DNA of 63,855 nucleotides, the filler included, from Octopus bimaculoides (taxonomy: Eukaryota): NCBI RefSeq assembly GCF_001194135.2. It is 6 parts of 6 records of this genome, joined end to end, with 100 filler letters (N's around TTAATTAATTAA, not from the genome) between each part and the next. Parts side by side here need not be neighbours in the genome. Positions count along the whole stretch, not along the records: positions 27,548 to 43,122 come from NC_068986.1; 5 more parts are not named here. One strand, written 5' to 3'. Both the position numbers and the translations under genes were made by a program. The notes beneath the pieces were generated by a model. That model was not told where the DNA came from. It did no database searches and saw only the letters and a program-made list of their open reading frames with translations. The stretch's first letter is position 1; each line of letters begins with the position of its first letter. This document shows positions 5,306-43,699 of this stretch, piece by piece.

Positions 5306-6254
5306 ACCTTATTTTAAAATGTATTTAGTATAATTTGCTCGAATCCAATTTTAAAGATAAGACTTTTTCTCGTTTATCTGCTTTATTTAATCATATTATA
5401 TCATACTTAAATGTAGATACTGAATGGAATTTGAAAGTATTAGAAGATATAATCTATATTCGCTGCAGCAAGTCTGGATATTTTTAGCTATTTAATTTCA
5501 GTCTTTTGAGAATTTTGTTCTTTTAGTATTTTGGAATTCAATATTACTAGTTACATAACTTAGTGATTGCTGTAATGTAAGAGATAATTTCTCGATTAAG
5601 AGAATCCGCGACGCTGTTCCAATATCTCGTTGAAGCATTTTCGCTTCACTTCATTTTTATAGTTAATGTCCTTTGAAAAAGCGTGACGCCACAATCTCGT
5701 ATTTCCCTTCTTCTAAATCATAGGTGCTGATGTTAAAAAAAGCAATATTATTAATAACATAATGCAGTGAGAGCCGTTAAACAATAGATGGTTCCCAGCG
5801 AGCAAACCTTCTACGATGTAGTTTTTATCGCTTTGTATGGTAGACCATTTCACTTGAATTATGGCTATAATTTTAAAAGAAATGAATGAATTCCAGAACC
5901 ACTGTTTTCTAAAGTATATGGTGAAATGAAACCAAAATTATGATGAATACAACCTTATAAGAAGTCAATATTTGAAACAGGTTACCTTCATACTAAGTGA
6001 TACAACAAAGATGTCATTATGTTGTTGGTCCTTCCCTTTCACGCCTGTCAAAATGTCCTCAGCATATTTCAAAGACAATGCAGATTAATCCAACTTTTCT
6101 GATAGTATGACCAAACTAAATTAACTTCTTAACTTAAAACAAAACACTAGGGCTTACTTTCTTTTCCATTCCAAATGGAGTCGATTAAATAAGTACACGT
6201 AGCATAATGAAATAGAAAAAATATCGACAATGGTCCTTGCTAATAATGCATCTT

Positions 6255-27547: not shown

Positions 27548-27628
<81 letters not shown>

Positions 27629-28442
27629 TTTTTAATTAAATTCTTTAGAAGTTGATTCTCTTTGAGACCTGTTATTACTGTTTGGCGTTCATACATCTGA
27701 AACTTAAACTGAAAATTAAAGAGTTGTTAAAACCACATCGTTCATTCAAGTGTAGGAACAGAATGTTGTAAGATTTTACATTATTTCGTTTTCTGAATTT
27801 ATATTTAGTTAGATGATAGACGATATGAGGTAAAATGAGTTTGGAGGCTGCAAGTGACCTTCACATCATACGGTTACTGTGGAAAGTATGTGGGTAATAT
27901 AGAAACCATATGGTCAACTGACAATGTATCTGACCGCCAGATAAAACTTGTGACCAACAGACACATTGTGTGACTACATGAGCGTGTTGTCACTGTATAT
28001 GATAATGTGAGACTGTTATCTCTGATATTTTGGTTACTACTGGCTCATAAGTAATTTTCTTCGAAAGGAAAGATATGAAATAATTGTGGTCTGTTTTGTT
28101 TTCCTGTTCCATGAAAGACTCGGAGTGTCAGCAAGCGAAGTTAAACTTGTAAGACTGTGGTTAGTTAAATGTGTTGCAAAGACCAGGAGACTCGGTTAGA
28201 ACATATGAGTCTATGTTTGATTAAGTGTGTTTCAAAGATTTCTTCTTGATGTTACTCGTCACCTTAAGCAGTGAAAATAGTGAGTTGATTCCTAGAGAAT
28301 TGTATTTATGCCATAGGGAAATTTTCTGCAGAAAGCAATAGAATTGGGGTCTGTTTCATCTTGGTACGCTCAAAAGGAATCGGTAAATATTTAAGACTAG
28401 AGTTCAATTGGATAGGGAGGTGAGACAAAAGGTAGGTTTAAG

Positions 28443-28690
28443 ACAGGGTTTCTCAACCGGAATCCATATGACCTTTGGGGCTCCATATAAGATTTTATTG
28501 TTAAAATTTGTGTGTAATAAACTTCTTATACTTCTACAACACACGAAATATTTTAGCTTTTTTACACAATTCCTAATATTTAATTATAGAAATGCGGTAG
28601 GGTTTTTTATACACATCAAATAGCTACGTAGGTCTAGTAGAGTAAAATAGGAACCCAAAGGGTCCATAGGCAAAAAATGGTTGAGAAGTA
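28443..28690. mobile_element. hAT-like MITE
   Basis: cagggtttctcaaccgg ... aatggttgagaag termini resemble CAG.GGTTCTCAAC hAT-type ends. Related single ends occur at ~21703 and ~42227. Confidence 0.55.
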
Positions 28691-28939
28691 TTTATTTCAG
28701 ACAATGATAAAGGTTAAATTTGTTAAGAGCAGAAAATGCCAGTCACCTAAACTGGACGTGGTTCTATATCAAGAACAGAGCAAAAAGGGTAAAGATGTGT
28801 AGTGAGTAGAAAGTAATCGGAGTTCGAATTTTGTGTAGAGTAGTTCTATGAGTAAAAGACACAGTCTGGATATCTGAAAATAATTCGGAATTAATGTTTG
28901 GAAAAGAAAGAAAACAAACACAAAACATTCGTTTATAAA

Positions 28940-29115
28940 CTGTTAATTATTGAATGACATAACTCTTAATTATCGCATGACATATCATAGTTAATTACTG
29001 AATGACATATAATTTCTTAATTATTATATGACAATCTTTTGTTGATGATATGAATGACATAAATTGTTAATTAGTGGATGACACATCATTTTGATCATTT
29101 ATGTATGATGTCAAT
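28940..29115. repeat. Degenerate ~22-28-bp tandem repeat (ttaattattgaatgacata core)
   Basis: About 6-7 imperfect copies of taatta..atgaca. Confidence 0.65.
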
Positions 29116-31296
29116 TATTTTACATTATCAAAAGTTTGAAGTTAGTGACCTTGGTCATTTTTGGTCAGTTTTGACCAGATCGTTTAATATAGATAATCAT
29201 TAGTTCTGGTCATGTGTATCAATAAATTTATATTAACATATAAATACATATAGGTATATGGCGGGGAGATGAGGATTTAGAGGGAAAAAGACATAATCAC
29301 ACATTTCATATAAACACACGGACACATATACACACACACGCACGCACGCACGCACGCATGCACGCAATCATATGTACACATATATTTTCATATAAGCACA
29401 CGCACACACTCATACGCACGCACACGTTAACGGAATTGTTTTAATGAATTGTACACTTGATTCTAGGAAACATGAGTAACAATCAGTTGACATGTGTGCA
29501 TATATTGACTTCAGAGTATGTTTATTTGTAGTTGTGTAGGTGATGTGTGTGATTTCTATCAGAACTAAACTTTTATTTCTAACTTAGCAATGTCATATGA
29601 CCCTTTTTTACCAAGGGACGTCACAAATCTACAGAGCAAACTGTTCTGAAAGACCCCAAAATCTAAAGTGAAACCAACTTTAGAATATTCAATGAGAAAT
29701 AGGTTTAGTTGATCTCCATTTTACAAATGACAACTACATATTATCAAAGAAGGCTGGAACTTTCTACAAAATGTAAAGCATTCTTGTCACCTATGATAGC
29801 ACGAGATGATTCTATTAAGTCTTTTGCTTTCGACTTCCTGTAACTCAGAAATTGATAATTGCCAAATACATTCATTTCAAATAATATAAACCAAGATAAT
29901 GTTTATATAACGCATGAATGTCTCGTGTATTAATATTATATGGATACATGCACTAAATATCAAACAAATGTAGTATGGCACTTGAGGTGTGCTGCATATA
30001 GCATGAAGGATGCAATCGGAATAGTAAGTCACACAAGAGATATTAGCAGGAGACGTGTGGTAATAAATACGTAGAGTTGCTAAACGATTTAGCACAATGC
30101 ATGTAGTGGAAATGTGTGTCTAATGGAAGCCAAAGTTTGACTCTTTCCTGTAGCATGTAAGAAATTCACCTTCATGAAATGTTGCTTTACATCCTTGTGT
30201 TCACCTGACAACTTCGGATTATATACAGTTAGGACTCACGTTACGGATTTATTTTGATAATAAGTGAATATGACATTATGATTTTTATGGAAACAGTAAC
30301 AATATGAGTGTAATTAACAAGAAGAGTTGTGTTAAGAAACTATAGTTTAACAAGAATATGGTTAACTTGTACAAATATAACAAATGATTTCTACCACAGG
30401 CACAGGGTCACAAAATTTAGTGAGTTGGGTACAGTCGGTTTTAATTATACCAGTCCTGGAACCGGTATTTGTTTTATAGATTCAGAATAATATGGCGGGA
30501 TTTGAAATCAGAATGTAAATAAATAGCGCAAAACATTTTCTCCCGTGCTCTGTCAATTCCACCATCTACAGCTCTCAGACGGTTGTATCTAGTCCAAATA
30601 TGTAATATGATCCAATATAAACATACAACAATCTAAACTGATACATTTCACTAACAACTATATAGAAGTAAGTCTAACAAGTGTACAACTAACGATTTCA
30701 CGTCTGGTGTTTCCTCATAACACTATTCTTGCCAAATCTCCGGCCACGAATTTAATTTTAAGACAAATATTTTGGGAAGGGTACAGTTGATTTAAACAAC
30801 CCAGGTTTTTGACTGGCATTTATTTTATGAACACTTCTGTAAATTTAATGTAAAATTATATAACTAAATTACGACTATGAATTTACCAATTCTATAACAT
30901 TGCTTTCACTAGTTAATAAAATGAAGATATGATACAACGGCTCAGGGATTCTAAAGGAGGAATGTGGCCGGTTCATTGGACTTCACTACATAACTAGTAC
31001 TTAACTATTGATCTTGTTTAATTGATTCTGTCTTACATCAATGGATAATAATTCCAACGAGGTGAACTTTGATTTCCATTATTTCAAGATGGATGGAATA
31101 AATACCAGTCATGCACCCAGGCCAATTCATCTTACTATGTCTCTCCTCTACCATTGATAAATCAATATGTAAGTAAAGAGCAAGGGAGCTGCTTAAAACT
31201 ATAGTTTGGGTCAACTTGGCATAAAGTTGCCTGGACTGCTATAAATTAGAAGCAATTGGAATAAAATTGACAAGACTACAAATAAATAGACTGGAG

Positions 31297-31544
31297 ATTG
31301 CTGTGTGGAAGACACAAGTTAGCCATTCAGAAACACACAAAGACCGTTAACTTCATTGAAACATTTATTTGTAATACTGTGCCAAAATTTTCGTCGCTCG
31401 AAACTGCGCAAAATTTTGTCGGTGAACCGATCGCAGTTTCGAGCGACGAAAATTTTGACACAGTATTACAAATAAATGTGTAAGCGAAGTTAACGGCCTC
31501 TGTGTGTTTCTGAATGGCGAACTTTTGTCTTCCACGCTACAATC
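31297..31544. repeat. Near-perfect inverted repeat (foldback hairpin/palindromic MITE)
   Basis: Arms of ~110 bp (31297-31408 and 31432-31544), ~90% complementary by eye, with a 23-nt loop. Confidence 0.92.
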
Positions 31545-32014
31545 GCTTTAGTTTCAGCACACAATTTCAGATCAAAAGACGTGTTAAAGACGTACATCTT
31601 CTTAAATAGACTGGGTTATTGTAAAAAGACTGTACATTTATATACATATATGTACATTTATAAATTGTAATGGACAACTAAAGAGTAGATTCTGGATTGC
31701 TAAAACAAAATAGAATTGACCAACCTCTTATGATTTAACCACCTTGTAAAAAACTATTGATTTAAAATGATCGAAGACACTCCAATCATATCCACCCTAT
31801 CTGTAACTCGGACATAGTCTACCTAGGATTACATTATCCTATTTGCTTTAAGATTGTTGCGTGTAATTTGAGGGATATTGTTTGTTACTTTTCATATGTT
31901 GAGTTGCAATATAGAAGCTCTACCTATAAACTCGTTGCTATTGCTGTGATGGTTGCTTGAGTTACTGTTAATGTTGTAGTTGTTGAATTTGTTGTAATTA
32001 CTGTGTAGCTGTTG

Positions 32015-32046
<32 letters not shown>

Positions 32047-32487
32047 GGTGGTGGTGGTGGTTTTGGTGGTGGTGGTGGTAGTGGTGGTGGTGTTTATCTC
32101 AGATCTTTCATCAAAATCATTCCAGCCGTGATCATCTCGTCTTTTCCTTGACACAGTTCACCTACAATTCAGTGTAGCATTCTGTTCTAAACCAGATATT
32201 GATGGAAGATTTAGCTGCTTTTTCAAGCAGATCAAGCGACCGCGTTGATGTTCTTTTGTTGACGATTTTGTTGCTGATATAGTTGTTGACTATATGTTTT
32301 TGATGTTGTTGATGGTGTTTACCATACCATTATATTTAACCGCTTCGCAACGTCAATCAACTCCGAGGCATGAAGAATAAATTTACACCAGTTTCCAATT
32401 CCTTAAAAAGTAATTTTATTAATTAATTATCATATTTTATTTTTATCATCGCCAATCATCCTCGTCGTTATCATCGTCGTCGCCTAC

Positions 32488-32518
32488 TCACCAATTCCCC
32501 ATGTTGGTGTCGTTGTTG

Positions 32519-32592
<74 letters not shown>

Positions 32593-32667
32593 GCTATTGA
32601 TGTTTTCTGGTCGTTTATTCATGTTGTCACATTTACAAAGTTGCCCTGCTTGAATCTGCTGCTGTTT
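32488..32667 (-). CDS. Possible C-terminal continuation of the PERCC1-like ORF after the gap (KQQQIQAGQLCKCDNMNKRPENINS-polyN-DTNMGNW*)
   Basis: Open frame whose poly-Asn composition resembles the upstream ORF. Its frame relative to the upstream part is unknown because of the 740-N gap, so it could instead be 3' UTR. Confidence 0.3.
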
Positions 32668-33407
32668 NNNNNNNNNNNNNNNNNNNNNNNNNNNNNNNNN
32701 NNNNNNNNNNNNNNNNNNNNNNNNNNNNNNNNNNNNNNNNNNNNNNNNNNNNNNNNNNNNNNNNNNNNNNNNNNNNNNNNNNNNNNNNNNNNNNNNNNNN
32801 NNNNNNNNNNNNNNNNNNNNNNNNNNNNNNNNNNNNNNNNNNNNNNNNNNNNNNNNNNNNNNNNNNNNNNNNNNNNNNNNNNNNNNNNNNNNNNNNNNNN
32901 NNNNNNNNNNNNNNNNNNNNNNNNNNNNNNNNNNNNNNNNNNNNNNNNNNNNNNNNNNNNNNNNNNNNNNNNNNNNNNNNNNNNNNNNNNNNNNNNNNNN
33001 NNNNNNNNNNNNNNNNNNNNNNNNNNNNNNNNNNNNNNNNNNNNNNNNNNNNNNNNNNNNNNNNNNNNNNNNNNNNNNNNNNNNNNNNNNNNNNNNNNNN
33101 NNNNNNNNNNNNNNNNNNNNNNNNNNNNNNNNNNNNNNNNNNNNNNNNNNNNNNNNNNNNNNNNNNNNNNNNNNNNNNNNNNNNNNNNNNNNNNNNNNNN
33201 NNNNNNNNNNNNNNNNNNNNNNNNNNNNNNNNNNNNNNNNNNNNNNNNNNNNNNNNNNNNNNNNNNNNNNNNNNNNNNNNNNNNNNNNNNNNNNNNNNNN
33301 NNNNNNNNNNNNNNNNNNNNNNNNNNNNNNNNNNNNNNNNNNNNNNNNNNNNNNNNNNNNNNNNNNNNNNNNNNNNNNNNNNNNNNNNNNNNNNNNNNNN
33401 NNNNNNN

Positions 33408-34279
33408 CACTTATCTTCATAAATATCACAAGAGTCCTCGTCACCATGCTTACGACCGAAAAACTTCTGTATATCGGCACTGATCAACTGAGCAAAATCT
33501 ATCAGTTGTTTACTTGCATTTGGGGATTCAGGTCTTCGAGGATAGTTGAGAACTGGAAAGTAAACTTCTTCGAGGTCAGCCGAATAATGTGAATCATGAT
33601 CACTAAAATCATCATCGTCAGCAACGCAATCATCATCATCATTATTATCATTTTTATTATTATTATTATTATCATCATCATCGTCGTCGTTGTTACTGTT
33701 GACGTTTGTGTGACCGTCGTGGTAATTGCTTTTCATGACATTATTGCAAATAACAGTTGAATTTGCTAAGTTGCTGTGATTTCTGAAATGGCTAAATCCT
33801 TGGAAGTGCTCACCATTGAATACATTGTTGCTAACATGTGCAGCAGTTGCAGAAGACATCTCAGCTGTGCTAATACTGCATCTATTATTGCAATAAATGT
33901 CTGTGTCTTCACTACAACTATCATCAAAACCATCCTCATTATCTTGTCCGTCGAGAGAGGCAGCCTTAGCTAGAGCTTGAAAAGATTTTTTAAATATCGA
34001 TGTTGGTGTAGTCCTCAGTTCAACAGGCCTCAAAGACGGTAGGTTTGCTCTGTGAAGACTCGCTGTCACGTTACTGTCATGCATAGTAGCACCAATGGAA
34101 GCAACTGCTGTCATAGCTGAAAGTTTATCGTCTGGCTCCAATGATACACCACGTCCTCTCTGTTCTGGGTGACTAAATCTAAACAAACGATCATCGCTGC
34201 CTGAACACTGACTATTCAATGGCTTTCTGAGTGTTTCCTTTTTTAGTAATCTTCGTTGATCGCTTCTTCGAACGCACAT
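33408..34279 (-). CDS. PERCC1: PERCC1-like protein, N-terminal ~290 aa (3' end lost in gap 32668-33407)
   Basis: The only long, non-repetitive open frame in the window. An acidic D/N tract precedes PESPNASKQLIDFAQLISADIQKFFGRKHGDEDSCDIYEDK, which matches the PERCC1 core as I recall it (human ~[42 protein letters not shown]). An in-frame TGA lies immediately upstream of the ATG. Confidence 0.85.
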
Positions 34280-34296
34280 TCACAATACTCGATCAC

Positions 34297-34312
34297 CTGA
34301 AAATAACAATAA
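34297..34312 (-). other. Predicted 3' splice acceptor 17 nt upstream of the PERCC1-like ATG (5'-UTR intron)
   Basis: Minus strand attgttattttcag|gtgatcgagtattgtgaATG. Confidence 0.55.
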
Positions 34313-36799
34313 TATAATATTACCATTAATTGAAACATTGACAGAAATTGCATTAGTAATTATTATAAGGCGTTGACAGTTGTAATAAAACAACGGCCTT
34401 TATAAGCAGTCAAGATAAGGATATCAGTTATATGAATGTTAGCAGTCATAAAATTAATGATAGTTAATACAAGAAAAATAGCAATAATTTTGAAAATATT
34501 ATCAATCAGTAGAATGTTATCATTACAATAGGGTTTCATATATGTAATATAGCGAGATGAAAAATATTGATCAACTGAGGTTATCCAAATACATTGGAAA
34601 CAAAAACTTCCTCTGAGTGTGTTTAAAACTTGAAACCGAACAACTCGGATAAGATCAGTGGTGATCGAGACATGTGATCAATATAGACAATGTATGTTGC
34701 AGGGAACTTGGTCTTCAGAAGCATTTAGACAGTGCGGTGAACGTGTTTCGATCATATTAGACCTCCTCAGCGGAACAAATTCTATTCATCTGGAATATAT
34801 ATATATATATANNNNNNNNNNNNNNNNNNNNNNNNNNNNNNNNNNNNNNNNNNNNNNNNNNNNNNNNNNNNNNNNNNNNNNNNNNNNNNNNNNNNNNNNN
34901 NNNNNNNNNNNNNNNNNNNNNNNNNNNNNNNNNNNNNNNNNNNNNNNNNNNNNNNNNNNNNNNNNNNNNNNNNNNNNNNNNNNNNNNNNNNNNNNNNNNN
35001 NNNNNNNNNNNNNNNNNNNNNNNNNNNNNNNNNNNNNNNNNNNNNNNNNNNNNNNNNNNNNNNNNNNNNNNNNNNNNNNNNNNNNNNNNNNNNNNNNNNN
35101 NNNNNNNNNNNNNNNNNNNNNNNNNNNNNNNNNNNAAAAGTTATTTTATAGTTCACGGTTAGCAGCCAGGAGTATTTCTTAAACCGTTAGCTTCACATTT
35201 CAACAGCTTAACTGAAATTTAGCCCAAGTAACAAGAACTGAGAGGGATATAGTGGAACAGAGAAACTGTGGTTGATACAGATAATTTGACATTATTTTTG
35301 ATTTCTGCATCCAAAAACATTTAACAGACAAGTATTCTTTTTCTTGGGACAAATTCTTTGTTGATCAGTGTTATTCTTATCGTAGTTTACAAATCCAAGC
35401 ATGAAAACTTTGAAGGTTTGGAGACAGAGCCCCCTTTTCACACACGCACACACATATGCACTTATATATTAATGATGTACACAAATACATGGCATGTATA
35501 CATAATACTGAAATACGCATAAAATAAACCCATGCAGACAAACATATTAATATAACAAATTTTAAAAAATAAATACATAAATCAATGAAGAAACAAAAAA
35601 GAAACAGTAAGATTATACATGTTGACTTTATTGGGTATTTCTGTTTATTTAGAAACCTACAATGAAAAGGTCATTTCACNNNNNNNNNNAGAAACCTACA
35701 ATGAAAAGGTCATTTCACAGACGCTAAACGATAAATTTCAAAGGGTACAACCTTAACGTTGATACCGCTCCTCTTAACGCAGAAAATTTATCTCGCTTTT
35801 GGCTTAAAAATACAGTTTTTTTCTATTTTTAGACCTCTGTAGCTTTTCCTCCAATTTTGTTCTCCACAACATCATACCTTCATAGCAATAAGACTGGAAG
35901 ACTACATTATTATAGCTGATTTTCAGATGTTTTACTGTCTTTTAAAAAACGCATATTTTGCGAATAAAAAAGAAAACTAGATCCCACCAAAATTGAAAGC
36001 AGTCTGAGCAAAATTAAAGGGGGCTGATTTGGCGAATGAAACTAACTAGATCCGAACTTTCAAGCAAAGGTATCGAGTACGTTAAAGCACTGACAGATAG
36101 GGTAATAAAGTTAGACAAACGTTGGAAGCCACTGGTGAGTAAGAACTGGGCAGACCTAGGGCTAAACAACAACAGTAACAAGCAAACCGTCACACAAGAG
36201 AGCGTATATAATGGTCACTATCAACCTCATGTTATCTATCATCTGATGGTCAGTGTAAACACAGGATGTCCACACTGTCTGGTTTGACAGACATGTAAAT
36301 TGTTTCACTGTCGCCATTCCCGCCTCTGTCTCTCTCTCTCTAACTATCTCTCTCTATCTATCTCTCTCTCTCTATCTCTCTATCTATCTCTCTATCTCTC
36401 TCTCTCTTTCTTTCTCATATACGCTCGCGCACGCACACACATGCACTCACAGACTCATTCTCGAACTAGTCTATATTTTTGTTTGTAGTACGACGAGGTT
36501 CTGTGTTATCGGAAGTCCAGGTGATAAGACCATCAAAATATGTGTATGCGTATGTGCATGTGTGTGCGCGTGAGAGAGTGACAGAGAGAAAAGAAGGAGA
36601 GAGAGGGACAGTGTGTATGTGTGTGTGGAGGGAGGGAGCGAGTATGTACCTGCATGCGTGTAATGGACTAGATGCTGGTTAGCGCCATCTAATGCTCTGA
36701 TATCTTCGGATTAAATTCAACTCTAACCCTAAAACTAGAAGACTTAATACGTGTGTGTGTGTGTGTATGTGTGCTTGTGTGTGAGTACGTATGTATGTA

Positions 36800-36845
<46 letters not shown>

Positions 36846-38679
36846 NNNNNNNNNNNNNNNNNNNNNNNNNNNNNNNNNNNNNNNNNNNNNNNNNNNNNNN
36901 NNNNNNNNNNNNNNNNNNNNNNNNNNNNNNNNNNNNNNNNNNNNNNNNNNNNNNNNNNNNNNNNNNNNNNNNNNNNNNNNNNNNNNNNNNNNNNNNNNNN
37001 NNNNNNNNNNNNNNNNNNNNNNNNNNNNNNNNNNNNNNNNNNNNNNNNNNNNNNNNNNNNNNNNNNNNNNNNNNNNNNNNNNNNNNNNNNNNNNNNNNNN
37101 NNNNNNNNNNNNNNNNNNNNNNNNNNNNNNNNNNNNNNNNNNNNNNNNNNNNNNNNNNNNNNNNNNNNNNNNNNNNNNNNNNNNNNNNNNNNNNNNNNNN
37201 NNNNNNNNNNNNNNNNNNNNNNNNNNNNNNNNNNNNNNNNNNNNNNNNNNNNNNNNNNNNNNNNNNNNNNNNNNNNNNNNNNNNNNNNNNNNNNNNNNNN
37301 NNNNNNNNNNNNNNNNNNNNNNNNNNNNNNNNNNNNNNNNNNNNNNNNNNNNNNNNNNNNNNNNNNNNNNNNNNNNNNNNNNNNNNNNNNNNNNNNNNNN
37401 NNNNNNNNNNNNNNNNNNNNNNNNNNNNNNNNNNNNNNNNNNNNNNNNNNNNNNNNNNNNNNNNNNNNNNNNNNNNNNNNNNNNNNNNNNNNNNNNNNNN
37501 NNNNNNNNNNNNNNNNNNNNNNNNNNNNNNNNNNNNNNNNNNNNNNNNNNNNNNNNNNNNNNNNNNNNNNNNNNNNNNNNNNNNNNNNNNNNNNNNNNNN
37601 NNNNNNNNNNNNNNNNNNNNNNNNNNNNNNNNNNNNNNNNNNNNNNNNNNNNNGTGTGTGTGTGTGTGTATGTGTGCTTGTGTGTGAGTACGTATGTATG
37701 TATATGATGGATTCTCCCGTAGAGATTTCGACGTATGAGATCTAACAGCATGTCTGGGGTTTGAGTTTTTTCTTTTGTTTTAGCTCTGTTTGAGCATTAT
37801 GTCTCTTACGAGACTTTAACCCACCCAACGATTTACAGACAAGTCCACAGATTGGTCATAAGAATGGGTTATTATGTAAAGCAGCTGGCATGTTAATTCG
37901 ATACTTTGCCTTTGCTCCCATCTCTTTAAGATGATCCAGACAGTCCAATTCATAGTTCTTTATGGCTTTATCACAAGTCAAACTTAATTCGTTGTGATTC
38001 AATGTTCCCAGGGAATCTTTGTCACTCTCAGGTTAGCTTTGAGCTTATTCATGGTCTTCCTTTATTTCTCATGCATAAATTTCATTTTATTTATTTTAGT
38101 CTTTTTCATTGGGAGAATTCATGCTGCTCACTAACCACATGACAAGACTCTTTTGTTCTAGTCAAGCGAAGTGTTTGTTTTTGGTTGTCTGAATCGGTTG
38201 ATGTGTATATAAATGCATGTATGTACGAATAATATATTTGCTTGGAGGGTATGTGTTCACTTTAATATACAAGTGTCTATGCTATTTACTTTTTTCTCTT
38301 TAATAATACAAGTATTTATGCTTCACCCTCGTGTGCGCAGATTGATGCATTCCCATAGGCTCAGGAACTGGGCAGGGGGTGCAAGCGCATCCCTTAATTT
38401 TTTTTTTTTTCTGTGACGAGTGAGCAATGAAAATGCTTTGAACCTCCTACTGAAAAACTTCGTCACCAAAACAAACGAGCATAAATCCATTTTTGGACTG
38501 ATTTTAAATATTACTTTTTCATTTTTGGATTTATCTGATTTAGTTATGATAATTAGTATTATTAAATCTGATTGTTTTGCATTTAAAATTGAAAAAAATC
38601 GACATTGTAAAAACTTTTGAACCTGGATTTGCACCCTCTAAGCAAATTTTATTGCTTCACTTATGTGCATGTGTGTGTG

Positions 38680-38761
<82 letters not shown>

Positions 38762-39139
38762 AGAGAGGAAATTCACATAAGAGTAGGATTCTAGAGCATT
38801 TCACATGCTTTTCATGTTTAGCATGGAAAACTCATGGAGAATCTCTGAAAGGTTTTGCATCACTGGTTGATCGTATTACGAGAACACAGATTAGTTTGCT
38901 TTGTTCTTCTGTATATATGTATAAAAGTACGTTCAAACAATTTCAGTTTGACGAACAACATGAATATGAAATTTCAATATGCAGCGTTTTTGACGGATAC
39001 GGAATGATACTAAGTGATGAGATTAAATAATGTAGTCGTAGGTTAGATGCATTATGACTAACTAAAGAAGTAGATCGGATGGTTTACAGCTGGTTTGCCT
39101 TTATCCAAAGGATTATCTACAACAACAATAATACTAATA

Positions 39140-39950
39140 ATAATTCTTTTTTTGTAATAGGCATAAGGCCTGAAATTTTGTGAGATGGAGGCAAGACGAT
39201 TACATCGACCCTAGTACTTTGATGGAGTTATTTGGGATGTTTGGTGTGTTTAACAATATCATATTCTATACGTATATCTATTTGTATGGTGTGGGAAGAT
39301 GTGAAGAGTGTAATTTATGAAAATATAGGTGATGATTTATTTGTTATTATGTCAATAATAATTTTGTGTATTGACACTTTATTTGAGGGATTTATTTTTC
39401 AAAATGTGGTGATTTGTTTTAATGAAGTAATTAGATCGTAATCAGATAGTAATCAGAGCGTACAAATGAGCGAAATGCTGGTAAGCTTTTTGCCCGACGT
39501 GCTAACAATTCTTTTCTACTCTAGGCACAAGGCCAGAAATTTTGGGGGAAGGGGCCAGTTGATTAGATCGATCCAGAACGCAACTGGTACTTAATTTATC
39601 GACCCCGAAAGGATGAAAGGCAAAGTCGATCTCGGCGGAATTTGAACTCAGAACGTAAAGACAGACGAAATACCGCTAAGCATTTCGCCCGGCGTGCTAA
39701 CAATTCTGCCATCTCGTCAGCTTAATCATAATAATAATCCTTTCTACTAAGGGCACAAGGCCTGAAATTTGTGGGGAGAAAGTAAGTCGATCACATCGAC
39801 CCCGTGCGTAACTGGTACTTATGTTATCGACCCTGAAGAACGAAAGGCAAAGTCAACCTCGGCGGAACTTGAACTCAGATCGTATTGACGAACAAAATGC
39901 TGCTAATCCCGACGTGCTAACAATTCTACCAGCTCGCCACCTTAATCATG
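39140..39950 (-). mobile_element. Cluster of three SINE family B units, the third interrupted by a NUMT
   Basis: Reverse complement of the 14387-type unit. Heads at ~39945, ~39720 and ~39510; tails at ~39735, ~39515 and ~39150. Confidence 0.85.
39219..39436 (+). pseudogene. nad5: NUMT: fragment of mitochondrial nad5
   Basis: Invertebrate mitochondrial code gives LTMSYSMRMSICMVWEDVKSVIYENMGDDLFVIMSMMILCIDTLFEGFIFQNVVICFNEVI. This resembles the ND5 segment LT..YS.RL....M.G....... N..D......M..L....GG. The strand is T/G-rich, as expected for mtDNA. Confidence 0.72.
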
Positions 39951-40363
39951 ATAATAACATCAACAATAACAACATCAACAAAATCAGCAGCCACAGTAGT
40001 ATCCAAACAGCAATTGAACAAAAGCAAAGGGCCAGCGATCACAACTATTACAACACGAATAAAAACAACACCAACAGCAACAATCGATAAGTTCGAGGAA
40101 TGGACAATTATAAGTGAGATGTTGTATATTGAGGGTTTAAGTTGACGCCCTTAAGATCTATAAAATTTGTCGGTGTGTATACAGTGAGGTGAATGCAATA
40201 CTCTACGCAGTAATAAATTGTTCCAACAAAGCTTAAAAACAGATTAAGTAAATCCTCTCACGTTTCCGTCTGTTGTTGTTACTGTTGTTTATCTTAATAA
40301 TTTCCCTCCTTGTTACACTGGTTACTCATCTCTTAATTAAATACCCTCTTTCCTTTTCTCTTA

Positions 40364-40414
<51 letters not shown>

Positions 40415-40593
40415 NNNNNNNNNNAGAGACAAACAGAGGCGGAACATGCATATATACGCACAGATGATATAAACACACAAAGACACATAACTGAGTGTAT
40501 GTTATTTGCACGCTTGGTAATTTGTATGCGCATGTATAAGCATATATCTTTGTATGTGTAATATATATCTACATATATGTTATCACATACAAA

Positions 40594-40654
<61 letters not shown>

Positions 40655-41149
40655 NNNNNNNNNNNNNNNNNNNNNNNNNNNNNNNNNNNNNNNNNNNNNN
40701 NNNNNNNNNNNNNNNNNNNNNNNNNNNNNNNNNNNNNNNNNNNNNNNNNNNNNNNNNNNNNNNNNNNNNNNNNNNNNNNNNNNNNNNNNNNNNNNNNNNN
40801 NNNNNNNNNNNNNNNNNNNNNNNNNNNNNNNNNNNNNNNNNNNNNNNNNNNNNNNNNNNNNNNNNNNNNNNNNNNNNNNNNNNNNNNNNNNNNNNNNNNN
40901 NNNNNNNNNNNNNNNNNNNNNNNNNNNNNNNNNNNNNNNNNNNNNNNNNNNNNNNNNNNNNNNNNNNNNNNNNNNNNNNNNNNNNNNNNNNNNNNNNNNN
41001 NNNNNNNNNNNNNNNNNNNNNNNNNNNNNNNNNNNNNNNNNNNNNNNNNNNNNNNNNNNNNNNNNNNNNNNNNNNNNNNNNNNNNNNNNNNNNNNNNNNN
41101 NNNNNNNNNNNNNNNNNNNNNNNNNNNNNNNNNNNNNNNNNNNNNNNNN

Positions 41150-41186
<37 letters not shown>

Positions 41187-42429
41187 TAATAACAATAATA
41201 ATCTTCGAATGGAGTTTATAAACATCCTAATGCATCGCTATGCGCGTTTCCACAGATTATATGTTTTTTTAAGATCATAGACCGTATTCTTGGAATGGTT
41301 ACAGTGCAGTCCGTAGTGTCCATGGACATACGGGTAGAGCATGTTCATGCATTCTTTCTTGGTGTTTGTCTTAAAGGTATTTATTAGTGAGTGAACTCGG
41401 CGCATCTTTGTTGTTGATGTTGGGTAACTTTCTACAGGTGTTAGCAGAGTTCTTGACCTGTAAACCTAAATTAGAGCAATGGAATCAGAGAGACGGTGAA
41501 ATTGAAAATCGTTTCGTGAAGAAAATGAAATGGATCTGTTTTGTTAGAACATCTATTTTGTTGGAAAGATTTCCCAAATTGCAGTAGAGCCTTTGCTCCC
41601 TTCCTCAAGGCAATTATTTGCTAAAGGCATCTCGATCAACGTTGCAAAGTCCTCCAACTAGCAACTTCTCGATCAATATGGCTTTATAAGAAACGGTTCT
41701 GCTGATAGAGACACCACATATATTTCAACCCTTAACACTGCTGCACTGAACACACACACATATAACAAAATACTGCCAGAATCAATATTTCCCACCTACT
41801 TTCCACATCATCACGGGTACATTGTAGCTAAGTGTGAAAGTGTTTCCGATCATTAAAAGGCAACAAGGCAGTCGCAGTCCAGTTGATGATGTTCCTCCCA
41901 TGCTTTTCGAAGACTCCGGTCGTCAACACCTATTATCGCCAACATCACTCTTTGTCTAAAAAGTATCCACCTCTAGTCTATAGAAAACTCTTGACAGTTT
42001 GTCTCATTTCAAAAGAGATCTCTGACAATTTAACTTACTCCCAGCATTTCAAATACAGTACCGGACATTTCATCCAGTTTCCAGAAATCTGGAATTTCCA
42101 GAAATTCTGGAATACTGAGTAACATCATATATGATACTGTACCCTGTATTCAATAATCTGACCCTCTTTTGGGAGTTGCGTAATTTGCATCCGGTGTGTC
42201 AAAATTAGTTTGTTCTTTACTTTTTGCGGTTCTCAAACTGGGGTCCACGGTCCCCTAGGGGACCGCGAATGGACACTGAAGTATTGTGAAAACGGGTGGC
42301 TTGAGACAGTTAAGTTAAAAAATTTTTAAACTTCCAATTTTTCGCATGCTATCATCCAAAAGGAAGACTTCTAAAACCCACGCCACGACACTCTTTTGCT
42401 AATCACACATATGTTGTATAATAAGTGTG

Positions 42430-42830
42430 ATTGTCCGATGGAAAATATGCAGGTATAACGGTTGATCGTGCATTTGCTGTCGCTATTCTACGCTCACATG
42501 ATTCACCACTCTACTATTGCAATCCACACGTTTGCATGTCTCGCCGTTATTATCCTCACCGGTGCATGTTCCCGCATGACTTTGCCCTTTGCCAGACATC
42601 CATTCTCATCCTGCATATTGGCTGGGCTTTGTAAGGCATGGCTGTTTTTCATGGCAACGTGTTCCGACAAAACTGTCTTCTCAACGGTTATCAATTCACG
42701 GAAGTTTATCTACGAAAAAACAACGTTCATATACGCTTTGGTTTTCTTCCAAAGATAACAGTGAGATGTAAGCTTTATTGCTAATTAGTACACCCAAAAG
42801 CTGACTACAATAAGGCATATATGCACACCC
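42430..42830 (-). mobile_element. Highly decayed mariner 5' fragment
   Basis: Minus strand has a gggtgtactaattagcaataaagc TIR-like start and weak similarity to a mariner HTH region. Confidence 0.4.
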
Positions 42831-43699
42831 GTAGTATATAATAAATACGAAATAAATATACGATGTAGTTATATTAAATTGGTTTACTGAATCTTATTTC
42901 TTTTAACCATGCCCCCCCCCAAAAAAAAAGAAGTAAAAGAAAATGAGATATGTTCAGTCTTATTTGAAATTCGATTTTACAGTGATAAAGTCTTGACGGA
43001 GAAGAGAAACCACATTGAGTTTTGTGCTCCAAGGTTTTGGTGTCTACTTCACTAAAGCCCAGCAAGTTAAAGAGCCACTTCGAAACGAAGCATCCCAGTT
43101 CAACAAATAGAGATGTCGACTTNNNNNNNNNNNNNNNNNNNNNNNNNNNNNNNNNNNNNNNNNNNNTTAATTAATTAANNNNNNNNNNNNNNNNNNNNNN
43201 NNNNNNNNNNNNNNNNNNNNNNTATATATATGTCTATGTATATATATGTATGTATACATATGTGTGTGCATGTATTAATTGATTGATTAATTAATTAATT
43301 TGTACACGAGTGAAAATTTATACGTGAGACTGTCATTGTTAATGACATGTCTTTACCAAAGAAATGCCCTTTTGTTGCTCAATTTGCGGTGCTTTTCCGC
43401 AAAATAATTTTTGCGCTCATGATCAGAAGCAGCGACGAATTTAGATGAAGAGAAAATGAAAGCTGTTAATCTTGAAATTCCCCTTCGAAGGCCTTTAAGA
43501 ATGTAAAAGGAACATACATCTTGACAATGTAGCTCCTTTTTCAGCATCCCAAACACTTCGGTAAAACTATACTGAATTGATGGGTTTCAAATACGAAGGG
43601 CTGGTCAAAACTGTATGACTAACCACTTCTGTAAAGGCAAAAAGGCCTTATGGGCCAAAAGAACCCGTCCACATACGCACATATTCACACACACACGCA

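Follow-up and report, generated by a model that had tools for sequence, protein, structure and literature searches.

The study of Sanchez-Pulido et al. (2022, PMC9710580) described PERCC1 orthologues in molluscs, annelids, echinoderms and chelicerates, and cephalopods are not in the species it lists. In the human protein the first part of the N-terminal conserved box (Nt-P) covers residues 79-106 and interfaces 2 and 3 (I2 and I3) cover residues 173-222, and remote homology of Nt-P to the N-terminal helix of FAM181 and C19orf85 has been reported (PMC9710580). Binding of PERCC1 to TEAD and its role as a co-regulator are in silico predictions, human PERCC1 included (PMC9710580). A 2025 study in human beta cells found exogenous PERCC1 in the nucleus and no up-regulation of YAP/TAZ pathway genes. 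The original prediction for the locus analysed here knew of no functional work in cephalopods, and our literature search likewise returned no paper with both 'PERCC1' and 'octopus'.

Here we analyzed a window of 63,855 nucleotides (filler included) of Octopus bimaculoides DNA, in which the piece at positions 27548-43122 carries an open reading frame (ORF) that belongs to the PERCC1 family. The original prediction had called it a candidate. Mollusc PERCC1 was published in 2022 (PMC9710580) and the word therefore overstates the novelty; the locus is a mis-annotated octopus gene in a family already published for molluscs, and it adds coleoid cephalopods to the published range.

Compared with known PERCC1 proteins, the visible part of Nt-P in the window ORF is 47% identical to shark and 66% identical to amphioxus, and the cephalopod orthologues keep the shark order of Nt-P, I2 (LxxLF), I3 with its serine and PDFSDLLxSW. 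Unlike in these proteins, an insert found in coleoids puts the helix of the visible protein at about residue 200 instead of about 80-130, and the mollusc-wide motif DDFSDHDSHYS is not evident in shark. FAM181A/B and C19orf85 are likewise small and mostly disordered and have an N-terminal helix for which remote homology to Nt-P is reported; FAM181A/B also have a TEAD-binding omega loop, solved as 6l9f, that our family profile matches at E=0.0011. The similarity to FAM181 that can be detected is, however, limited to the omega loop of the relatives and does not extend to the FAM181-type N-terminal box (Nt-F), and the FAM181 name is absent among the 78 proteins matched by the profile. YAP, TAZ and Yorkie resemble the cephalopod orthologues in the omega loop (PMRLRKLPDSFF vs. 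PMxxRKLPxSFW) and in the LxxLF helix of interface 2, whereas these orthologues are without interface 1 and a PDZ-binding tail. Pfam found WW domains neither in the window ORF nor in any complete cephalopod orthologue, and TEADIR3 was the sole family matched in the latter. None of the motifs in common with YAP/TAZ/Yorkie lies in the visible window sequence.

The reading frame and its family

The ORF comprises 290 codons on the minus strand (34279..33410) and ends at a gap of 740 N. It starts with the ATG at 34279-34277, directly downstream of an in-frame TGA, and its last codon, AAG (K) at 33412-33410, is followed by TG at 33409-33408 and then by N at 32668-33407. The peptide runs from an N/D-rich tract to DDDDFSDHDSHYSADLEE and then RPESPNASKQLIDFAQLISADIQKFFGRKHGDEDSCDIYEDK, exactly as quoted in the original prediction, ending at the gap after the acidic tract. 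The TG at the gap edge is compatible with a W codon (TGG), W being the residue after EDK in all 38 aligned relatives. The features of the locus are, in the direction of transcription:

34297..34299, minus strand: candidate splice acceptor tattttCAG/GTG, with which the exon would begin at 34296; aligned in Argonauta hians
34115..34279, minus strand: upstream extension MCVRRSDQ...DDKLSA, 55 codons, from the NCBI-model start; probably 5'UTR
33950..34114, minus strand: conserved start and N-terminal box MTAVASIGATMHDSN...TPTSIFKKSFQALAKAASLD, with MHD and TS[VI][IF]K[KR] across molluscs; dN/dS 0.155
33626..33949, minus strand: low-complexity insert of ~108 residues, N/D/S-rich, solely in the 4 cephalopod rows of alignment A1
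33629-33681: imperfect ATCATT/ATCATTATT tandem repeat with a period of 6/9, inside the insert
33563..33625, minus strand: acidic motif VADDDDFSDHDSHYSADLEEV, in which DDFSDHDSHYS is nearly invariant in molluscs; dN/dS 0.126
33410..33535, minus strand: visible half of the Nt-P box, RPESPNASKQLIDFAQLISADIQKFFGRKHGDEDSCDIYEDK, matched by BLASTP in shark and amphioxus; ten columns invariant in A1; dN/dS 0.047
33458..33517, minus strand: helix ASKQLIDFAQLISADIQKFF, by AF2 the sole confidently structured element of the visible protein
32668..33407, no strand: assembly gap of 740 N, with ~184 remaining codons expected
30477..30588, minus strand: terminal exon of the public model, YNRLRAVDGGIDRAREKMFCAIYLHSDFKSRHIILNL and a stop, joined across the gap; probable annotation artefact

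The original prediction had seen the only real ORF in 64 kb, which holds within 27548-43122, where no other long ORF was found: the next longest N-free ORF from an ATG is 89 aa, the longest N-free ORF with any start codon (137 aa) comes from a TG microsatellite, and all other listed frames span stretches of N or microsatellites. At the GC content of the piece (~34%) we estimated that ~7% of random codons are stops and that the chance of a 290-codon open frame is ~5e-10 per start. This is far too low for 31 kb of two-strand sequence to produce such a frame, which is not a chance event. The Pfam scan of the window ORF gave chance-level matches only (Tir_receptor_C, E=0.34; DNA_pol_phi, E=0.59), and the family was therefore assigned from sequence and profile searches.

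These searches showed full identity (100%) between the ORF and residues 1-290 of the NCBI protein P0001 (327 aa, Octopus bimaculoides), encoded at ~81.16-81.19 Mb of the chromosome record CM046606.1 (GCA_001194135.2). The closest relative is P0002 of Argonauta hians (426 aa, E=1.4e-86), and two further relatives, P0003 and P0004 (412 aa), are squid-like; a squid-like Logan contig (SRR20545814, L003) lacks a poly(A) tail and was not counted as transcript evidence. Besides P0002 the first search matched ~38 mollusc proteins with E from 6e-37 to 2e-5, ~35 of them other than the squid-like pair, several of which are named 'protein PERCC1-like' (in Mya, Dreissena, Saccostrea, Pecten and Liolophura). 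A profile built from A1 extended this to 78 proteins, and every informative name among them is PERCC1 or PERCC1-like, with matches in Aplysia, Biomphalaria, amphioxus, the hemichordate Ptychodera and the brittle star Amphiura, so that the named homologues span bivalves, a chiton, gastropods, amphioxus, a hemichordate, a brittle star and a shark. The profile reached the 'protein PERCC1' of the shark Pristiophorus with E=1.8e-49. By BLASTP the window ORF alone matched residues 124-172 of shark PERCC1 (47% over 49 aa, E=4e-10) and residues 89-123 of an amphioxus PERCC1-like protein (66% over 35 aa, E=5e-14). The mollusc PERCC1 orthologue proposed earlier was thus borne out by the named homologues as well as by direct comparison with shark and amphioxus. 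Membership of the PERCC1 family is clear from these results, and with regard to both identity and anatomy we are highly confident that the window ORF represents the 5' portion of the one coding exon of the O. bimaculoides PERCC1 orthologue, cut by the 740-N gap.

The start of the protein is probably not M1, as Argonauta and both squid-like proteins begin with MTAVA, which corresponds to M56 of the ORF (34114), the Argonauta sequence aligned to 34115..34279 is broken by several in-frame stops and by indels of lengths not divisible by three, and the context of the ATG at 34279 is weak (T at -3, T at +4). We therefore take 34114 as the conserved start and 34115-34296 as probable 5'UTR. The pyrimidine-rich CAG/GTG at 34299-34294 is common to the octopus and Argonauta hians loci and is likely the acceptor of the ORF exon, which would imply an upstream non-coding exon. 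When the Argonauta locus was compared with the window DNA, alignments were limited to the CDS, the ~110 nt before it and microsatellites, and the DNA 3' of the gap had no match. Positions 5890-6000 of the Argonauta locus (L001) align to 34115-34220 within a 70%-identity match that also spans the CDS. The proximal 5'UTR seems to be constrained, in that these ~110 nt align despite nearly saturated synonymous sites in the CDS.

Selection on the coding sequence was estimated by the Nei-Gojobori method for octopus vs. Argonauta over 235 codons. Synonymous sites of this pair are near saturation and the ratios are therefore rough: dN/dS was 0.14 for the whole visible ORF, 0.155 for the N-terminal box, 0.126 for the acidic motif and 0.047 for Nt-P. 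The insert is the fastest-evolving segment, with a pN of 0.27 and saturated synonymous sites. The direction is clear, and the coding sequence is under purifying selection that is tightest in the helix box.

The insert measures ~60-110 residues in coleoids (~108 in O. bimaculoides and ~60-80 in the squid-like sequences) and is placed between the TSIFKK box and the acidic motif, where no other mollusc in A1 has one. In octopods it is rich in N, D and S and in squid-like sequences in D, H and P, and AF2 predicts it to be disordered (pLDDT 35-50). The much longer N-terminus noted in the original prediction is real and is due to this cephalopod-only insert. Its figure of ~250 aa before the motif is right when counted from M1; from the conserved start M56 the distance shrinks to ~195-200.

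Conserved boxes and the position of the helix

The order of conserved boxes in alignments A1 and A2 is common to octopods through shark and agrees with the Nt-P, I2 and I3 and C-terminal boxes of PMC9710580. The boxes are, from the N-terminus:

Box 1: MHD...TS[VI]IKK
Box 2: acidic tract with DDFSDHDSHYS, mollusc-wide
Box 3: Nt-P, PDxTKQLLxFAxMVNxDIQKFFGRKKGDEDSCDIYEDKWxxxKSGRELYYADLLRIAQG
Box 4: interface 2, LGPLNELFEYGL
Box 5: basic KRLK..KK stretch
Box 6: interface 3 omega loop, PMxxRKLPxSFWxEP
Box 7: C-terminal box, PDFSDLLxSW

Structure prediction by AF2 of M56-K290 gave a single helix at residues 200-219 (M56 numbering, pLDDT ~95) and disorder elsewhere. The Argonauta protein was predicted with helices at 207-226, 249-261 (second of Nt-P), 314-325 (I2) and 396-403 (C-terminal) and with an ordered omega-loop region (I3) at 347-365, and the window helix corresponds to the first of these, 207-226. 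The window thus shows one of the five structured elements of the PERCC1 family, and with it the GRKxxDxDxCDIYEDK/R sequence that characterizes this part of Nt-P. In every complete relative interface 2 (LGPLNELFEYGL, LxxLF) lies ~85-100 residues downstream of the helix, and in complete relatives the interface 3 omega loop (PMxxRKLPxSFW) lies ~140 residues downstream. For interface 2 the Argonauta and squid-like orthologues have LGPLNELFE[FY]GL; neither the visible ORF nor any other part of the piece contains this interface, and the PDFSDLLxSW box, found in all complete relatives including shark, is likewise outside the visible window sequence. TEADIR3 (PF15238, the Pfam family of the omega loop or TEAD interacting region 3) matched Argonauta 353-368 with 26.9 bits (cut-off 26) and the squid-like protein 334-349 with 30.1 bits, as well as other relatives, and had no match in the window ORF or P0001. 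Taken together, the predicted TEAD-binding part of the octopus gene is not visible in the window, and both I2 and I3 are absent from the visible sequence.

The original prediction had identified the helix KQLIDFAQLISADIQKFF as one of the proposed TEAD-contact elements, and it is indeed amphipathic with L and F residues and belongs to a family predicted to bind TEAD. That it is itself interface 2 is nevertheless highly improbable, as a separate canonical interface 2 and an omega loop lie downstream of it in every complete relative. Moreover, the helix aligns to shark PERCC1 124-172, and in human Nt-P begins at residue 79 and I2 and I3 at 173-222. A profile search of the PDB matched the TEAD-complex peptides of FAM181A (6l9f), YAP (3kys and others), Vestigial (6y20) and Yorkie (4re1), and these matches run solely through profile positions 221-256, the omega loop; no TEAD-complex peptide matched the helix region of the profile. 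TEADIR3 and the PDB peptides thus both point to the downstream loop, and the helix is the first helix of Nt-P, with no proposed TEAD contact. The estimate of roughly 80 residues before the motif in human, given in the original prediction, agrees with the first part of human Nt-P and suits Nt-P, not I2. The same profile search had FAM181A as its best PDB match, and FAM181 has mollusc members, the same I2/I3 motifs and an N-terminal helix of weak homology (HHpred E=0.28, as published), all of which would speak for placing the gene in this sister family instead of PERCC1. This assignment is hard to credit, since the FAM181A match covers just the 16-residue omega loop that is common to the whole superfamily, the named profile matches are all PERCC1 and none FAM181, and the PERCC1-specific boxes EDSCDIYEDKW-KSGRELYYADL and PDFSDLLxSW are common to the cephalopod sequences and shark PERCC1. 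The best-conserved visible element is hence the Nt-P helix of PERCC1 and not a TEAD contact, which is relevant to the design of binding experiments.

Public gene model at the assembly gap

The Argonauta CDS occupies a single exon of 1281 nt (426 codons) without interruption, with 552 nt and the stop after EDK, a length that fits within the 740-N gap. Because the Argonauta orthologue is a single uninterrupted exon, I2 and I3 of the octopus gene would fall in the gap, and by analogy we expect the gap to hold the second Nt-P helix (KSGRELYYADLLRIA), LGPLNELFE[FY]GL, KRLK, PMxxRK[LM]PxSFWKQP, DFSDLLESW and the stop. A tblastn search of the Argonauta protein against the piece gave nothing past residue 242. 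Among the profile matches in a collection of 5.8 billion proteins there was no C-terminal-only octopus fragment, and every match also covers Nt-P. The C-terminal 45% of the gene is thus missing from this assembly, and tests of TEAD binding in octopus need the missing half to be recovered (with GATATTTATGAAGATAAGTGG as seed) or the use of Argonauta or squid sequences.

The public model of the gene, P0001, is named 'GATA zinc finger domain-containing protein 14 [Octopus bimaculoides]' and crosses the gap by a splice from the GT at the gap edge (33410-33409, in the K codon) to the exon 30588-30477, so that residues 290-327 map to 30590-30477. The resulting 37-residue tail YNRLRAVDGGIDRAREKMFCAIYLHSDFKSRHIILNL has no counterpart in the aligned relatives, which continue with W..KSGRELYY, and no Pfam match. 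This 3' exon is probably a prediction artefact caused by the gap and lies outside the true gene. With E limits of 10 for the window ORF and 1 for P0001, Pfam gave no match to a GATA or zinc-finger domain, and the name presumably came from the N-rich low-complexity stretch.

Read literally, the public model describes a 327-residue, lineage-specific truncated form in which EDK is spliced to 30477-30588 and the TEAD-binding half is lost. The splice is formally possible, with GT at 33410-33409 and AG before 30588, and paralogues in the related FAM181 (C19orf85) and Vestigial families are reported to have lost interface motifs (PMC9710580). Such a form is nonetheless very unlikely: the donor would sit inside the invariant K-W junction and exactly at the edge of the gap, the tail is without homologue or domain, Argonauta as the nearest relative reads through EDK in one exon, and the splice would halve Nt-P with loss of the invariant KSGRELYYADL. 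The public name fares worse, and together with the view of the ORF as a chance or low-complexity frame its probability is close to nil. The middle third of the ORF is N/D-rich simple sequence, but the ORF has no GATA or other zinc-finger domain in Pfam, and outside the low-complexity part its conservation is strong and specific, with a dN/dS of 0.05-0.15. The gene publicly named 'GATA zinc finger domain-containing protein 14' is accordingly corrected to PERCC1, with a 3' exon and a start that are both probably wrong.

Predicted mode of action and flanking DNA

The visible protein consists of a disordered N-terminus with the N/D-rich insert, followed by the acidic DFSDHDSHYS and the first Nt-P helix. 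The full protein is expected to continue with the second Nt-P helix, the LxxLF helix of interface 2, a basic stretch, the omega loop and the DFSDLLxSW C-terminal helix; this layout is drawn by analogy, because the complete orthologues of Argonauta, the squid-like sequences, other molluscs, amphioxus and shark show such elements. PERCC1 would then act as a small, mostly disordered nuclear co-regulator, in which interfaces 2 and 3 may dock on the YAP-binding domain of TEAD/Scalloped, and the Nt-P helices and acidic tracts may recruit or compete for other partners. I2 and I3 of the complete orthologues correspond to the elements that YAP, TAZ and FAM181 use to bind the YAP-binding domain of TEAD, and the I3 omega loop includes a serine aligned with YAP Ser94. 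Binding of TEAD by the octopus protein is a double inference, that the motifs are in the gap and that they bind TEAD, and we regard it as somewhat favoured.

Judging from the invariant columns per box in A2, the two-helix module of Nt-P equals the TEAD motifs in its degree of conservation from octopus to shark. Possibly, Nt-P is a docking site for a second partner, and PERCC1 would then work at least partly without TEAD; we consider this rather unlikely. If true, docking of a second partner at Nt-P would fit the absence of YAP/TAZ target induction in human beta cells. The disordered coleoid insert upstream of Nt-P might tune Nt-P function in cephalopods.

Scans for Rfam families and tRNAs gave no matches in the piece 27548-43122. 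The remainder of the piece is AT-rich non-coding DNA, and the gene is isolated within these 15.6 kb. One ORF of 69 aa, at 39232-39441 on the plus strand, matched NADH5_C with E=5.4e-5 and 23.3 bits, below the cut-off of 28.2. As a mitochondrial insert it was rejected, as the frame does not extend under the invertebrate mitochondrial code, and the match is probably due to chance.

Microsatellites of (TTA)n, (TA)n, (GT)n and (AC)n adjoin at least one side of most long assembly gaps in the piece. The exception is the CDS-side edge at 33408, which breaks in ordinary coding sequence. The microsatellites at gaps are:

32522-32592
34795-34811
36803-36845
37654-37700
40366-40414
40597-40654
41150-41186

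On the plus strand, 39453-39957 holds two to three head-to-tail copies of a repeat with ~195-228 nt spacing and 76-88% identity, which resembles an interspersed repeat. The unit contains GGTACTTAATTTATCGACCC and GGCGGAATTTGAACTCAGAACG and looks SINE-type, and the ORF 39821-40090 is read from this SINE-like repeat. Towards the 3' side, about 1.1 kb past the gap, a near-perfect inverted repeat (31296-31408 / 31432-31544) has arms of 113 nt with 89% complementarity and a 23-nt spacer; it could be MITE-like or form a long hairpin.
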